Shown here: positions 37,776 through 48,321 of the stretch, one piece after another | Numbering within the stretch: the first letter of the stretch is position 1 | Layout: every line of letters starts with the position of its first letter | NCBI GenBank assembly: GCA_038496445.1 | Contig: JALMLS010000231.1 | Span: 154,393 to 218,392, forward strand | DNA from: Trichosphaerium sp. ATCC 40318 | Lineage: Eukaryota > Protista > Tubulinea | Length of the DNA: 64,000 nucleotides | Direction of reading: 5' to 3' | The notes under the pieces: model-generated | Told to the model about the DNA's origin: nothing | Seen by the model: only the letters and a program-made list of their open reading frames with translations | Databases searched by the model: none | Position numbers and translations under genes: made by a program

Positions 37776-37992
37776 ATTTATGATGTTGAATCAAGTGGAT
37801 TTCTTTGTAACCACGAACTCACTATGTATCTCAAACCAGCCAGTTTACAAGTTGTAGTCACAAACTGTAGTTTAACACATTAAGTGTTTCAGCTAGCAAT
37901 CTTAGAAAATTCGGCGAATACTGTTGAACAACTGCTTAAGTAGTTTACTGACTTGTATCAAACCTAAACGTGCCAGAAAGAGCTGTACTGAG

Positions 37993-38703
37993 ATGGATTT
38001 AGCCTCTCGACAAAGCAACAGCGCTTATAGTTTGCTTACAATACCATTGGAGCTACAACACATGATATTTAACCTAGAATCTCGCGCATATAGTGTTTGG
38101 CCTATTCTTTGTAAACAAGCTGCTTTTACAAGCAGATATGACTTTAATCTTCAAAAACATGGCCTGTTTATCTCCAGGGATAGAAAACAATCCAATTACG
38201 CTCATGGCAAACTACACGGTGCCTTGCGGAAATATGTACTCGCAGACATAGTAAACTACAAGTACAGACTGTTATCTGAGGTTCATTATGTTCATGGTGT
38301 AAAAGAAGGTGTCTATGAGAGATATGGTCCACGTGGCTTAGTTGAGAAGTGTTATTACAACAAAGGAAAGCTTCATGGTGAGTACAAGCTAATAAGCCAT
38401 GGACGGCAAAGAAAAGATGAGATCCGTCATTACAAGAATGGAAAGCTTCATGGTGATAAAAAGATATACCTTGACGGTAAGCTTGTAGAACGACATCAAT
38501 GTGTAAAGGGTAAACTACATGGAATGAGTACATTTTGGTACAACAATGGTAATGTTAAAAGCGAGGTACCTTACAATCATGGAAAGATTCATGGCACACA
38601 TAAACGATTTCACATTGATGGCAGATTTAAAATCTCAGAACATTACATTAAAGGTGTACTGTATATTAATGGGCAACCACAAAGAAGTACCGTTGTGAAT
38701 TAG
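37993..38703 (+). CDS. F-box-like + MORN-variant repeat protein, intronless (copy A)
   Basis: MDLAS...SLLTIPLELQHMIF...WPILCK then YxxGKLHG repeats. Confidence 0.88.
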   Translation: MDLASRQSNSAYSLLTIPLELQHMIFNLESRAYSVWPILCKQAAFTSRYDFNLQKHGLFISRDRKQSNYAHGKLHGALRKYVLADIVNYKYRLLSEVHYVHGVKEGVYERYGPRGLVEKCYYNKGKLHGEYKLISHGRQRKDEIRHYKNGKLHGDKKIYLDGKLVERHQCVKGKLHGMSTFWYNNGNVKSEVPYNHGKIHGTHKRFHIDGRFKISEHYIKGVLYINGQPQRSTVVN

Positions 38704-40204: not shown

Positions 40205-41700
40205 ATGTCAACCGAAAAGTACGAGGCAACAGCAAAGAATCAGGTGAAGAGATTAAGAAAAAGAGCCGCTTATGACAAGAAAACAGTTCATGAAGTATTA
40301 GACGCTTCTACTATAGCTCACGTTGGTACTCATATTATAATATGTAATTAACGCGCGTGTTGACGTTTGTATTAGGTTTCACTTCTGAAGACGGATCTCC
40401 CTTCGTTATTCCAATGCTATACGCTCGTAAAGTACGTATATCATGCGTTGACACCCATTAACAGCCTAAAACCAAATCTGTCCTGAGCTTCTTTTTTGTT
40501 CCCAAAACCGTTCGCTCATGTCTTAAATACCCTGTGCGCTTACGGTTTTCTTGCTCCTTTTAATGTGATCATTTCGATAAAATCTTCAAAATCGTCCATT
40601 CGCGCACAAAAACGTACTTGCGCGTATTTCGTTGCTGTAGAAGGGCTCGGACAAATAATGTAAACTAGTCCGAGTATTTCGAACTTTTTTTTTTACCTTG
40701 CTGCCAAAGTTAGTGAAGCTGTGTAACCTCCAGGTTGTCAACTCACACGAGGGTACAACAAACGAGTTGCATTGAATTTTCTATCGAAGTTACGGACAGA
40801 GGACCAAATTAGTTTTTTTTCTTTTTCTGGGGAATTTGACTTTGCTGGACAAGGGTCATCAAAACCGAGACTATCAAAACATTGTTGACTCGCTTTTTAG
40901 GATGAAAAGATTTACTTGCATGGAAGTATTAGTAGTAGGCTTCTTAAATTCTTGGCAACAGGCGCACAGATTTGCATTACTGTAAGTAGAAATGCGATAA
41001 GATTTATTCATGTTTTTTTTTGAACTAGCTCTTTTTTCTTGTTTTTTTCTTTTATTTACTTTTCTCGATGTAGGTAACCGTTATGGATGGTTTAGTTGTT
41101 GCTAGATCCGTTTTCCATAATTCTGTCAACTATAGATCAGTTGTTGTGTTTGGAACAGGAAAGGAAGTTGTAGGAGATGAGAAACTTGGAGCACTAAAGT
41201 GCGTCGCTATCTTTTTTTTTTCTTCTTTTTTGATGTGATTGCACGGGCAACTAACTTGTTATGATAAAGGATAATAAACGATGTATTAATTCCAGGCCGC
41301 TGGGAAGATTCAAGACTTCCAAATCCAACTGAAATGAAAGCAACAAAGGTACAACTATAAAAAAAAAATTCAGTATTTTTAAACCATCTCCAATGTTTTG
41401 TTGTTCGCAAACAACTAACTGTTCTTATTTAGGTTATCGTGATCGACATTGAACATGCATCAGCAAAGATCAGAAATGAAGGTCCTCATGATGACAAAAA
41501 AGATATTAAAGGTACCACAAAGCAACACGATTAACTCATACTAATGTAACCTAGATCCAAACTTGGCACATCTTTGGACCGGCGTTATCCCTTTCAGTAC
41601 AACCACTGGAACACCTGTTGACTGTGAAGACTTGGCTGATGGAGTAGAGTGCCCTGATTACCTAAAGAATTACAAAGTGAAGTCCCAAAGGACAGAATAA
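40205..41700 (+). CDS. Pyridoxamine 5'-phosphate oxidase-like FMN-binding (NimA-like) protein
   Basis: KRAAYD...AHVGF...PFVIPMLYAR...IYLHGS...DGLVVARSVFHNSVNYRSVVVFG...PGRW...SAKIR...WTGVIP. Confidence 0.92.
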
Positions 41701-41918
41701 AGTTGTGACGTCAGATTTCCGGGGTTTTTTTTGTTCGACACGTGAATTTCCGATCATCCCTACAGAGTCAGGCAGTTTCACATAAGAATTGACCTCAGGA
41801 ACGAACACTTTGAAGTCATTTGATATTTTTGTGATCTCAAATGATACCTGGGCTGTTCTCGTACAGGATTTCAATGAACTCTTCTAACACGAGCACAAAT
41901 ATTGTATTAATATGTGTT

Positions 41919-44900
41919 TTACACTATTTGTTTTACAATGTTATCAATATCGATAGCAGTAGGTCCTGCGAAATCAGGTCTATAGTAAGGGTACATTGCG
42001 CTCTTAGTAGTAGAAGAATGGGATAGGTTGAAAATATGACCGATTTCATGAGCCTATAAGCTTGGTTAAACAAAAAATTTGACAAAAAAGTTTTTCAGTC
42101 AAAAAAACTGTTCACGTACAAGAACAGGTCCAACATGGAACCCTGTTCCATGTAGAGTCCATCTCTCCTGTTCGTCTAAGGTAATCTGGACTTGACCGTT
42201 ACTCTTCGATTTGACGTGGCCAAGAGTGAATCCTTGAAGATAAGTAAGTATCAAGATATTTTAAGGCACTTTTTCTTTATATTTTACCTGGTCCGTCTAG
42301 AGCGAGCCATGTTACTACAACATCAGCAGTTGCTACATCAATTGTACGGACAAATTTTACAGCACCAGGTATACCCTCACTTATCGCAGAAGACCAAGAG
42401 AGGAAGCATTTTTCTACAACTTCATTCAAATCTTCAATACTCTTATCTTTATCGTTAATGTCAATCAAGTCTTGATCCTACACGATCATTAAGTCAACAC
42501 ATTGAACAAACTGATAGCAGAGCATTATCACTATGATAAATAATCTCAAAAGAACTAAATAGCATACAACTCTTCCAATTGCATATCTGAACTTTCTTTG
42601 ACCTGTTTTGAGTTTGTTAATTATTTCCAAGATTGGGTTGGCGAGATCGTCTGGGTCAGCACTTCTAGGACCTGTGTTCAAAACATTAAATACCGAATGC
42701 GATATCCTAATAATTTCGTACGGTGAAGTAAGCTTTTGGTGTTTGGTCCTACAACTCCATCTACTTTAAGTCCCCATTTTTGTTGGAAGTCTTTGATTGC
42801 TTGGGAGAGTGGAACATCGGCCTTTAGGTATCCATAGAAAGCCAATACCTATTTACAACAGTAAGTTTAAACGATTACAACTGTAAAGGGGTACAACTAA
42901 GATACAAAAGAAACAGGGAAAAGGCGGAATTTTTTTTTGTGGATTAGCTTACTCTTTTAAGTGACGCTACATCCTGTTTCCTAGCTTTATCCAAATTGTC
43001 GCTATCAATATCGCTCAATGAGAAGAAGTCATTTTCATGCAATATAACAGGCTCTAAAGGGTAAAGCTTAGAAGGAGCAAGATCAAAAGGTTCGAAACAA
43101 GTCTTCTTTGGTACCTGGGATTACCATGTTTTGCATATCTTCGTCCTCACTATTTTTAGCTTGGATAGTAACAATGACTTCATCGCTGTTTTTAACACCG
43201 AGCTCTTGAAGCGCAGATGTAACATCAAGAGAATAAGAGAAAGGATCACGTTCCTCACACTTCTTACACTCGATATCAGCGTGGTAAGTATCAAGAGAAA
43301 AAACAGAAATAACACCAACACAGTCTGGTTCATCAATCTCTAAATAACAAAAAAAAAGTGAGCACGTGATTTACATATTGAGTTTTTTTTATGAGTTATT
43401 ATGTTTCAGCAAATTGTTGAAATATACGCACGTGGGCTTGCAATAACACTTGATATTTGAGGGAAGTCTACTTTAGCCTTTTCAGCACCTTCAGCAGATT
43501 TTACATCAGATTTACGTTGGATGTAAACGTAGAAAGAAACAGACTCTGGAGGTGTTTCTACGTCTCTTAGAACAACGTATTTTCTTGGTACACGCATTTG
43601 CGATGATCTAGGTGTTGGGCTAGGAAGCAAATACGAGAAAGTATAGTCAAGATTGGCTAAATCGAACCACTCTTCAACAGTGGTGTACTTCCTATTTTCA
43701 TAAAATAAGACGATAATTCTTGAGGTTTTTTTTCGAGGATGCTACTGTTCGTACCCTGTATCGTTTTGCCATCCCATTAGTTTTCCAAACTGAGCTTTTG
43801 GTGCGAAAGGACCCATTTCTTCTTGTGGGTTTGTTGGTTTCTCATTTGGATAATGTGTTTGCCATGCGTAATAAATACGTTCAACATTACAATGATGTAA
43901 CCAAAAGATAGGATCAAAAGCAGCTGTATCAACACCAGACATATCTCCGCCTATGTAAAATCAAATGTCAATAAATCTAAACCAACAACGAAGATATTCA
44001 TTTTTCATTTCATATCACGTGCCTACAGCGACATGAACATCATCGTGGGGTTCTTCCAAAGAAGTTGCCGAAAAATTTCTTGCTGACATTGAAAAGTGCT
44101 AGCAGGCTACTGTAAGCGTTGTTATGGTTGTTTAATACACGTACGTCATCCGTATTTATCGCATCAGTGGCTTCACTGCGTACAGCACGAAATTGAAGCT
44201 CCCTAGCGATAGAATCAGGCGTAGTACGTCTTCTTCTTGTTCTACCTAAATTGTGACTTGTAAGATATATTTATCTAACAGAACCGCTTTATTTACTGTC
44301 TTACGTCTTTGGAAGTGAGGTCCAGAAGCTAGAGGGTTTGTTACAGTCTTCCATTCGCCGTCTAAGTACAATCTAATAAAAAAATTAGTTCAAACAAATT
44401 TGTTCCCAAAAAAGATCGGAGTTGTTGTCAGTTTTTCTCTCGCTCGTCATTATTTACGTACCTAACGCTTGGCCATGTTACAAACTCAGGGTAACCTTCA
44501 GCAAATCTAGTACCGGACCAATCCCTAAAAAAACGTTATAAAGACTGTTGTCACGTGTAAACCCGAAAGTGTTGTTTTTTGGGTTTTCTGACGCGAAACC
44601 AAAAAAAAAAAAAGGTTCGTACCAAAACGGTAACATGATCCTGTTTGCTGTCATATGGTCTCCAGGATACCAAGGATCATGATTTTGAAGTACATACTCG
44701 AACTAAAGCAATTATTAGCGACAGAAGCGATAATCTCCGTTCACAACGAAAATACAGTTATGAGTTGTTAACAAAAGACACGCTGTGTACTTACCTCAGC
44801 TAAGTAAGCGCGATGCCTAACGGAAAAATAAGTTCGTTACGAAATAACACAGATACGCCTCACGACATAGATTTGAGTGAAGAAAATACGAGATGAACGT

Positions 44901-45233
44901 AGTAGGAAAGATATCTAGAGCTCTTTTGTACAAAAAAATTAAAAACGTACCATGGTGGAAACGTCTCGCTTCTATGGTGACAATAAACTCTATTACGCGC
45001 AATCTTGACGTCTTCAGAGTCAGGAAGACCGCCTCCATGCATACCGGCGAGTTTTGCCCAATCGTCTATAATATCACGTGTTACAAAACGACACGCTCTA
45101 AAACAACCGTGAAAAAGTGCGTACCGGTTTGTTGCATGTTATGGAACGCTACAAATAGTCGATGAAGCGCAGCACCATCAAGTTCTCTTAGTTCTTGTCT
45201 AGCAGCGCGAGCTGGTCTTGGATACGATGCCAT
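41919..45233 (-). CDS. Tyrosinase - CxxC C-terminal domain - PG-binding-like prodomain - matrixin (M10) metallopeptidase fusion, about 17 exons
   Basis: ATG 45233 MASYPRPAR; CuA MHGG/YCHH/WHR; CuB EEPHDDVH...FDPIFWLHH; ECKKC; FYGYL...AIKDFQQKWGLKVDGVVGPNT; PRSADPD; DGPG; HEIGHIFNLSH; AMYPYY; intron phases checked from CuB to the stop are consistent. Confidence 0.88.
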
Positions 45234-45607
45234 TGATTTGAAAAACTTTCGGAGTTGTTGTCACAGGTAACGGGAAGCCAAAAAAAGAGGTAAACGGTAC
45301 CAAAATCACATTTATGAAAGCGTGATCTTTTCTTGTGGATTTCGTTAGTTCTAACACATCAGCGCTGTTGATAATGTGTTGACTCATATAAACGAGCAGT
45401 GGAAACCGGTTACAGCTTTTTGTGGAGGTATTGGTTGAACCAACCGACATACTCTGTGTTTGGTTGTTATCAGCTTGATTCTTACCCAACAAAGAAGCGA
45501 GAAAAGAGTGAAACACTTAGGGTAAATGAAGGTCGGTTTTGGAATGCCGACTTCCAAAAAAAACAGTTCAAGACATTAAAATTGTTTTATTGTTGCTAAA
45601 ACTAACA

Positions 45608-47562: not shown

Positions 47563-48321
47563 TTAGAACAAACCTTTCCTTTTCTTTAGCCTTTGTATAG
47601 CCAGTGTATTGCACAAAAGTATTCTTCTATTCTGTGGTTGCCCATCAATATACAGTACACCTTCAATATAATGCTCTGAGATTTCAAGTCTGCCATCAAT
47701 GTGAAATCGTTTATGTGTGCCATGAATCTTTCCATGATTGTAAGGTACCTCGCTTTTAACATTACCATTGTTGTACCAAAATGTACTCATTCCATGTAGT
47801 TTACCCTTTACACATTGATGTCGTTCTACAAGCTTACCGTCAAGGTATATCTTTTTATCACCATGAAGCTTTCCATTCTTGTAATGACGGATCTCATCTT
47901 TTCTTTGCCGTCCATGGCTTATTAGCTTGTACTCACCATGAAGCTTTCCTTTGTTGTAATAACACTTCTCAACTAAGCCACGTGGACCATATCTCTCATA
48001 GACACCTTCTTTTACACCATGAACATAATGAACCTCAGATAACAGTCTGTACTTGTAGTTTACTATGTCTGCGAGTACATATTTCCGCAAGGCACCGTGT
48101 AGTTTGCCATGAGCGTAATTGGATTGTTTTCTATCCCTGGAGATAAACAGGCCATGTTTTAGAAGATTAAAGTCATATCTGCTTGTAAAAGCAGCTTGTT
48201 TACAAAGAATAGGCCAAACACGATATGTGCGAGATTCTAGGTTAAATATCATGTGTTGTAGCTCCAATGGTATTGTAAGCAAACTATAAGCGCCGTTGCT
48301 TTGTGGAGAGGCTATATCCAT
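47563..48321 (-). CDS. F-box-like + MORN-variant repeat protein, intronless (copy B)
   Basis: Near-identical paralogue of 37993..38703. Confidence 0.88.
   Translation of the reverse strand: MDIASPQSNGAYSLLTIPLELQHMIFNLESRTYRVWPILCKQAAFTSRYDFNLLKHGLFISRDRKQSNYAHGKLHGALRKYVLADIVNYKYRLLSEVHYVHGVKEGVYERYGPRGLVEKCYYNKGKLHGEYKLISHGRQRKDEIRHYKNGKLHGDKKIYLDGKLVERHQCVKGKLHGMSTFWYNNGNVKSEVPYNHGKIHGTHKRFHIDGRLEISEHYIEGVLYIDGQPQNRRILLCNTLAIQRLKKRKGLF

Follow-up and report, generated by a model that had tools for sequence, protein, structure and literature searches.

Gene structure and transcripts

The 64,000-nucleotide stretch of the Trichosphaerium sp. ATCC 40318 genome analysed here (the window; assembly GCA_038496445.1, contig JALMLS010000231.1, positions 154,393 to 218,392, forward strand) contains an expressed gene that encodes two predicted zymogens, a copper-dependent pro-tyrosinase and a pro-matrixin of the matrix metalloproteinase (MMP) type, on one chain of 694 amino acids (aa). 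The chain carries no signal peptide, and both catalytic centres are conserved. The gene is present as a single copy in the window (tblastn) and consists of one 17-exon coding sequence (CDS) on the minus strand at 45233-41919 (window coordinates; all features of the gene lie on this strand). Its exon chain was joined by hand from a three-frame minus-strand translation of 41700-45600 together with a reading of the DNA, and was checked against transcripts. The exons are short and are separated by introns of 46-134 nt. According to the splice joints in transcript contigs, exons 1-6 lie at 45233-45125, 45065-44951, 44816-44795, 44702-44623, 44524-44462 and 44372-44305, exons 7-12 at 44245-44145, 44098-44023, 43950-43755, 43691-43432, 43339-43115 and 43053-42953, and exons 13-17 at 42848-42722, 42671-42568, 42477-42288, 42232-42120 and 42053-41919.

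The transcribed region extends from the 5' to the 3' untranslated region (UTR) over 41864..45295. Three contigs from three separate studies (X1, X5 and X2, with lengths of 2177, 2169 and 2083 nt) map to 41864-45279 with every intron removed, and a JGI transcript contig (L001) reaches 45295. Based on the transcript contigs, exon 14 ends at 42568 (donor GTATGC) and not at 42571 as first modelled, which adds one valine. The corrected product is identical, residue for residue, to P0004, an MMETSP transcript open reading frame (ORF) marked 'complete', and an in-frame stop lies within the transcript 10 codons 5' of the ATG. Gene, reading frame and ends are therefore settled. The single spliced frame proposed in the initial annotation is thus borne out, and the 61-nt intron at 43054-43114 that it had singled out for a transcript check is spliced out in the contigs of all three studies.

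Intron 8 (43951..44022) has GC-AG ends; its joint has a 5-base ambiguity, within which GC..AG is the sole standard-like pair. The remaining 15 introns are of the GT-AG type, and 10 of the 16 donors begin with GTAC. Intron 14 (42478..42567; 90 nt, a multiple of three) is removed in X1, X2 and X5 and kept in L001, in which introns 1-13 are removed and intron 14 is read through into the exon 15 side. Its retention introduces a stop at the last codon of the intron, an in-frame TAG, and yields a product of 578 aa (P0001) that would keep the tyrosinase, its lid and the MMP prodomain without the catalytic domain. Transcripts ending before the MMP exons had been named beforehand as an outcome that would speak against a fused product; one such contig exists, whereas the other three are fully spliced, and we treat the intron-retaining form as a minor form or unprocessed RNA.

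Predicted latent pro-tyrosinase

The N-terminal 445 residues are predicted from sequence and fold to form a latent pro-tyrosinase of the fungal/mollusc type. The type-3 copper core comprises residues 1-296 (43634..45233), ends at the LDYTF tyrosine motif and was delimited by Pfam, PDB profile matches and Foldseek. The Pfam Tyrosinase family (PF00264) matches residues 37-243 of the full protein with an E-value of 2.7e-35 (123 bits, cut-off 22.6). All six copper-binding histidines are present (CuA H46/H67/H76 and CuB H204/H208/H231), and the sequence YCHH contains a thioether-type motif, C65-H66-H67, although the covalent bond itself is not visible in sequence. PDB profile matches of the tyrosinase half include mollusc haemocyanin functional units, Agaricus PPO4 (abPPO4) and Aspergillus MelB. 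The AlphaFold model of the whole protein (predicted local distance difference test, pLDDT, 81.8; predicted template-modelling score, pTM, 0.73) has its best Foldseek matches among haemocyanin units, latent abPPO4, MelB pro-tyrosinase and the lid-bearing Burkholderia tyrosinase. These structural matches span 480-600 columns and thus cover both core and lid. In the ESM Atlas, the cluster structurally closest to the tyrosinase half consists to 43% of giant-virus sequences.

The core is followed by a putative C-terminal beta-sandwich lid (residues 314-445, 43034..43582) that was assigned by Foldseek, by alignment of its CxxC and phenylalanine, and by a weak Haemocyan_bet_s match; strands are predicted at residues 314-444 of the AlphaFold model. 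In a 57-sequence alignment, F377 (43301-43299) and C388-x-x-C391 (43268-43257) align with the Phe and the CxxC of fungal pro-tyrosinases, which makes F377 a candidate placeholder residue. In abPPO4, Phe454 acts as a substrate placeholder, Cys462-Cys465 forms the conserved CxxC, and activation depends on an unidentified protease; the CxxC of fungal pro-tyrosinases has been linked to copper loading or insertion (PMC4157443). The protein is predicted to lack a signal peptide, as its N-terminus is polar and part of the folded copper domain, with pLDDT >90 from residue 11.

Core and lid are connected by an apparently exposed linker (residues 297-313, 43583..43633), a candidate site for activating cleavage on the basis of low model confidence (pLDDT 57 at residues 301-310) and a clade motif. 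Matrixins generally prefer a hydrophobic residue at P1', and the linker contains Q308-M309-R310 (43600-43592), so that the hydrophobic residue after a putative cut before M309 is consistent with this preference. A Q-[M/I/L]-R motif is common to the close fused relatives described below and to the distant L064 (read from its ORF), and is absent from unfused relatives. Its position in the linker corresponds to that of the abPPO4 cleavage loop (PMC4157443).

Predicted pro-matrixin

Residues 455-694 are predicted, from sequence and from the model, to form a complete pro-matrixin, in which a three-helix prodomain and a switch segment precede the catalytic domain. The helical bundle of the prodomain (residues 464-512, 42729..42979) is recognised by Pfam PG_binding_1 (6e-9) and aligns with the prodomains of proMMP-3 and proMMP-1. 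The switch segment PRSADPD (residues 516-522, 42649..42669) occupies the position of the MMP cysteine switch PRCGxPD. The HMMER alignments to proMMP-3 (1slm) and proMMP-1 (1su3) run from the prodomain to the Met-turn and place LLHRPRSADPD opposite VMRKPRCGVPD, and family alignments agree; S518 thus stands at the position of the switch cysteine, and the PRCGxPD cysteine switch is not preserved. The matrixin catalytic domain follows at residues 541-694 (41922..42594), as indicated by Pfam Peptidase_M10 (PF00413; residues 557-677 of the full protein, 3.8e-16, 59.8 bits, cut-off 24) and by a pro-MMP fold match. Its zinc motif HEIGHIFNLSH (residues 652-662, 42050-42018) contains the three histidines and the catalytic glutamate (E653), with N659 at the Gly position of HExxHxxGxxH, which is a Gly in all relatives. 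The Met-turn methionine M670 (41996-41994) in SAMYPYY is invariant in the family.

Several other features of canonical MMPs are missing. The structural-zinc/calcium loop is deleted together with its HGD-type ligands, and a Thr stands at the last His position. Of the structural-zinc ligands (His, Asp, His, His) only H618 is left, and this residue is not conserved in the family. A haemopexin domain is absent. A separate model of residues 440-694 nevertheless reached a pLDDT of 91 and a pTM of 0.89, and its best fold matches are pro-enzymes (proMMP-10, -3, -1, -9 and -7), aligned over ~230-245 columns with template-modelling (TM) scores of 0.77-0.79 and root-mean-square deviations of 2.6-3.7 A.

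The domain features listed in the initial annotation all reappear in these assignments, at the positions that it gave. It had described a tyrosinase with six copper-binding histidines and a C-x-H motif in YCHH, a CxxC-bearing C-terminal domain, the lack of a signal peptide, a PG-binding-like helical prodomain, PRSADPD in place of PRCGxPD, and a matrixin with HEIGHIFNLSH and a Met-turn.

Conservation of the fusion

To find relatives, exon 10 was used in an exhaustive HMMER search, the whole protein in a word-based search and the C-terminal half in a profile search, and metagenomes were scanned. The same architecture was identified in seven further sequences with 25-45% identity to the window protein. 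These comprise P0002 (669 aa), P0008 and P0003 (both partial), P0009 (628 aa, an intronless ORF at 6001-7887 of contig L002), P0020 (767 aa, L003:212-2515), the metagenomic, transcript-like contig L055, which is the closest fused relative, and L064, a GC-rich and distant 753-aa ORF (27-2288). P0056 is a probable further fragment of the fused family. The fused relatives all derive from transcriptome or metagenome predictions, and none from NCBI or UniRef. As P0009 and L064 are uninterrupted single ORFs, the fusion is independent of any splicing model. A word-based search with the C-terminal half alone returned almost no matches, owing to its limited sensitivity, and the profile search did better. 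Among viral contigs, 47 MMP-like loci were found, none of them with a tyrosinase fused or adjoining. The nearest unfused tyrosinases are ~390-450 aa in length and lie on gene-dense contigs.

The CuB histidines, the CxxC, the three zinc histidines, the catalytic glutamate and the Met-turn methionine are invariant in six aligned fused proteins, and the same motifs can be read from the ORFs of L064 and L055. A tree of the tyrosinase half places all eight fused proteins on the same side of a branch with SH-aLRT (Shimodaira-Hasegawa-like approximate likelihood ratio test) support of 91, with long branches. The tree of the MMP half resolves the close clade of six (99) and leaves three distant fused members unplaced on long branches, and so fits one origin as well as several. 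One origin of the fusion is favoured. Transcripts of other strains differ from the window gene at 12 single-base positions, and 12/12 of these differences are synonymous (3 in the pro-MMP part). The repeated architecture, the invariant motifs, the tree branch and the synonymous-only differences together provide evidence that the fusion is under selection.

Several relatives have individual features of their own. L055 contains a lone in-frame TGA (L055:1295-1297) in an otherwise open frame of ~760 codons, which corresponds exactly to C370 of the window protein, a site occupied by Cys, Phe or Tyr in relatives. Selenocysteine, a variant genetic code and a sequencing error are possible explanations; as the contig lacks a 3' UTR, there is no place to seek a selenocysteine insertion sequence (SECIS) element. 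L064 starts with MGCGAS followed by a Pro/Thr-rich spacer, which resembles a myristoylation and palmitoylation signal and would tether the protein to the cytosolic membrane face; with just 26 nt 5' of the ORF, this start is uncertain. P0020 has an additional tail at its C-terminus, part of which resembles a C2H2 zinc finger, and its source labels it a C2H2 Zn-finger protein. The 11-kb contig that carries P0009 encodes eight tightly packed genes on both strands at 41-45% GC (L002:1-8924), including LRR_5, RING finger and Lipase_3 genes, a layout reminiscent of giant viruses or of a very compact eukaryotic genome; the ESM Atlas matches of one neighbouring gene product are compatible with either origin. 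The unfused relative P0013, on an NCBI assembly contig (L099:1307-11257), is located directly after a gene encoding GH19 and PG_binding_1 domains, and genes for S8, trypsin-like and C1 proteases lie upstream of it, possibly an unfused counterpart of a pairing of protease and tyrosinase.

Loss of the cysteine switch

The switch position differs within the family. The cysteine is kept in distant fused members (PRC in P0009 and PHC in P0020), and the window protein, L055, P0002 and P0008 have PRSA[D/N], P0003 has SRAG and L064 has GLRG. As distant fused relatives retain PRC or PHC, the Cys-less state is a derived loss in one clade of a family that began with an ordinary cysteine switch, and not a property of the architecture. 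In the close clade, loss of the switch cysteine is accompanied by loss of the structural-metal loop; L064 still has an HxxG-type loop. In the part of PMC9827992 that summarises Park et al. (1991), changes in the PRCGVPDV segment are described as making MMPs prone to spontaneous activation.

Comparison with known systems

The N-terminal half resembles the latent fungal pro-tyrosinases (abPPO4, 4oua/5m6b; Aspergillus oryzae MelB, 3w6w) and mollusc haemocyanin units in its six-His type-3 core, the Cys-x-His motif, the lack of a signal peptide, the exposed loop after the core tyrosine motif and a lid with a Phe before the CxxC. In contrast to the window protein, whose chain goes on into a pro-metalloprotease, these proteins end after the lid and need a separate, still unidentified protease. 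The core of the window protein is also more compact (~296 residues).

Features shared by the C-terminal half with MMP zymogens (proMMP-3, 1slm; proMMP-1, 1su3; proMMP-10, 9csx) are the three-helix prodomain, a switch segment equally spaced before strand 1, HExxHxxxxxH with a Met-turn, and the fold of pro- and catalytic domains noted above. It deviates from them in having Ser for the zinc-binding Cys, Asn for the zinc-motif Gly and a deleted structural-zinc/calcium loop, in lacking a signal peptide and a haemopexin domain, and in the position of the matrixin C-terminal to another enzyme. Bacterial karilysin (2xs3/4r3v) provides a sequence and fold match as another minimal non-animal matrixin catalytic domain, and its zymogen is kept latent without a cysteine, via an aspartate of its short propeptide. 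Unlike the window protein, karilysin is secreted, keeps its structural metal sites and has no helical prodomain. Arthropod prophenoloxidase is latent, lacks a signal peptide, is released on cell rupture and is switched on by proteolysis. However, its activator is a separate serine-protease cascade, and the enzyme is a copper protein of the arthropod haemocyanin type instead of the tyrosinase/mollusc type.

Possible self-activation and alternative explanations

We hypothesize that the protease module activates its own tyrosinase by cutting the core-lid linker, to which we give somewhat less than an even chance. This proposal is based on the fusion itself (a Rosetta-stone argument), its conservation, and the exposed linker with its clade-specific motif. 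After folding and metal loading, the matrixin module would shed or displace its own prodomain. It might then cut the linker at residues 297-313, possibly before M309, in its own chain or in neighbouring copies, which would free an active core phenoloxidase of ~35 kDa. The serine at the switch position and the lost structural-zinc loop suggest that latency is probably weak, and it may be controlled by how much zinc is available or by exit from the cell, in place of a thiol switch. The likely use would be rapid formation of quinones or melanin for hardening, sealing or defence. For the full reading, in which an intracellular matrixin without a cysteine switch and structural metals autoprocesses and then removes the lid of its own tyrosinase, so that one chain with two zymogens would act as a switch, we estimate a probability of roughly 0.35. 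Several observations weigh against it. A fusion is evidence of functional coupling and does not tell which partner acts on which, and Q-M-R is only loosely like a matrixin site. N659, which replaces a Gly in this protein alone, and the missing structural zinc/calcium loop mean that the protease could be weak or inactive. The isoform without a catalytic domain suggests that the tyrosinase part may function in the absence of the protease as well, and no M10 protease adjoins the gene in the neighbourhoods of three unfused relatives.

The foremost alternative, which we regard as rather unlikely, is a bifunctional effector without self-activation, in which protease and tyrosinase act on a common outside target, for example wall, matrix or prey proteins that are first trimmed and then cross-linked, and the lid is taken off by a different protease or opens in response to a trigger other than proteolysis. 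Any functional coupling would account for the fusion and its conservation, a latent tyrosinase can be opened without a protease of its own, as abPPO4 illustrates with its separate activator (PMC4157443), and the unfused P0013 clusters with S8, trypsin-like and C1 protease genes and the GH19/PG_binding_1 gene. However, the window protein and its relatives with a complete N-terminus lack a signal peptide, so that an outside target would require lysis or unconventional export, and with both modules being zymogens on one chain an internal order of activation is the simpler reading. That the matrixin is instead a degenerate, non-catalytic pseudo-protease, which would give the tyrosinase another regulatory or docking domain, is improbable. 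Such decay would fit the Asn in HExxHxxGxxH, the missing switch Cys, the deletion of the structural-zinc/calcium loop in the close clade and an intracellular location, where calcium is low, but not the three zinc histidines, catalytic glutamate and Met-turn methionine that are invariant across the family at 25-40% identity, the exclusively synonymous polymorphism in the protease part or the confidently predicted pro-MMP fold.

Two further possibilities concern the switch and the gene itself. The initial annotation had added that a thiol of the lid CxxC could block the protease zinc in place of the switch Cys and so couple copper loading to protease release. In favour of this idea, all aligned fused proteins have the CxxC and the nearest unfused clade lacks it. 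Against it, unfused pro-tyrosinases of fungi and ferns have a CxxC that aligns with that of the lid and has been connected with copper insertion (PMC4157443), which means that it is not a feature of the fusion. P0009 and P0020 keep both the switch Cys and the CxxC, and the C-terminal half modelled on its own adopts, at high confidence, an ordinary pro-MMP fold with its own prodomain in the usual position. We thus consider a role of the CxxC as a protease zinc ligand very improbable, and this part of the earlier proposal is not supported. Finally, two neighbouring genes might have been joined falsely, either in the initial annotation or during transcript assembly, since chimeric contigs do occur among transcripts and one that crosses two genes does not prove a single transcript. 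In the contigs of three studies, the halves are linked in one continuous frame by the spliced junctions 43115/43053, 42953/42848 and 42722/42671, and intronless relatives (P0009 in L002 and the L064 ORF) each encode this fusion in one uninterrupted ORF. Given these junctions, the ORF identical to P0004 and the single-ORF relatives, an artefact of this kind was rejected, and its probability is negligible.

Genomic surroundings

The gene is flanked at a distance by MORN-repeat ORFs at 37924-38703 (plus strand) and 47563-48321 (minus strand), and F-box/leucine-rich repeat (LRR) ORFs are located at 53.5-59.2 kb of the window. None of these neighbouring long ORFs is related to the tyrosinase-matrixin gene.

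Implications

The combination of a tyrosinase with an MMP was not found in full-text literature searches, among the named database proteins searched or in large ESM Atlas clusters. The architecture is thus provisionally considered undescribed, in line with the first reading of the locus, which knew of no characterised example; both halves belong to well-known families. The window protein illustrates that a matrixin can have neither a secretion signal nor structural metal sites, and the occurrence of relatives with and without the switch Cys in one family constitutes a natural experiment on matrixin latency. A self-activating single-chain latent phenoloxidase could also serve as a triggerable cross-linking enzyme. 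For the question of how lid-type pro-tyrosinases are activated in vivo, a conserved fusion to a protease zymogen provides a Rosetta-stone clue. If self-activation by the matrixin module holds true, a matrixin would here act intracellularly, and a defined protease family would for the first time be linked in nature to the activation of lid-type pro-tyrosinases.

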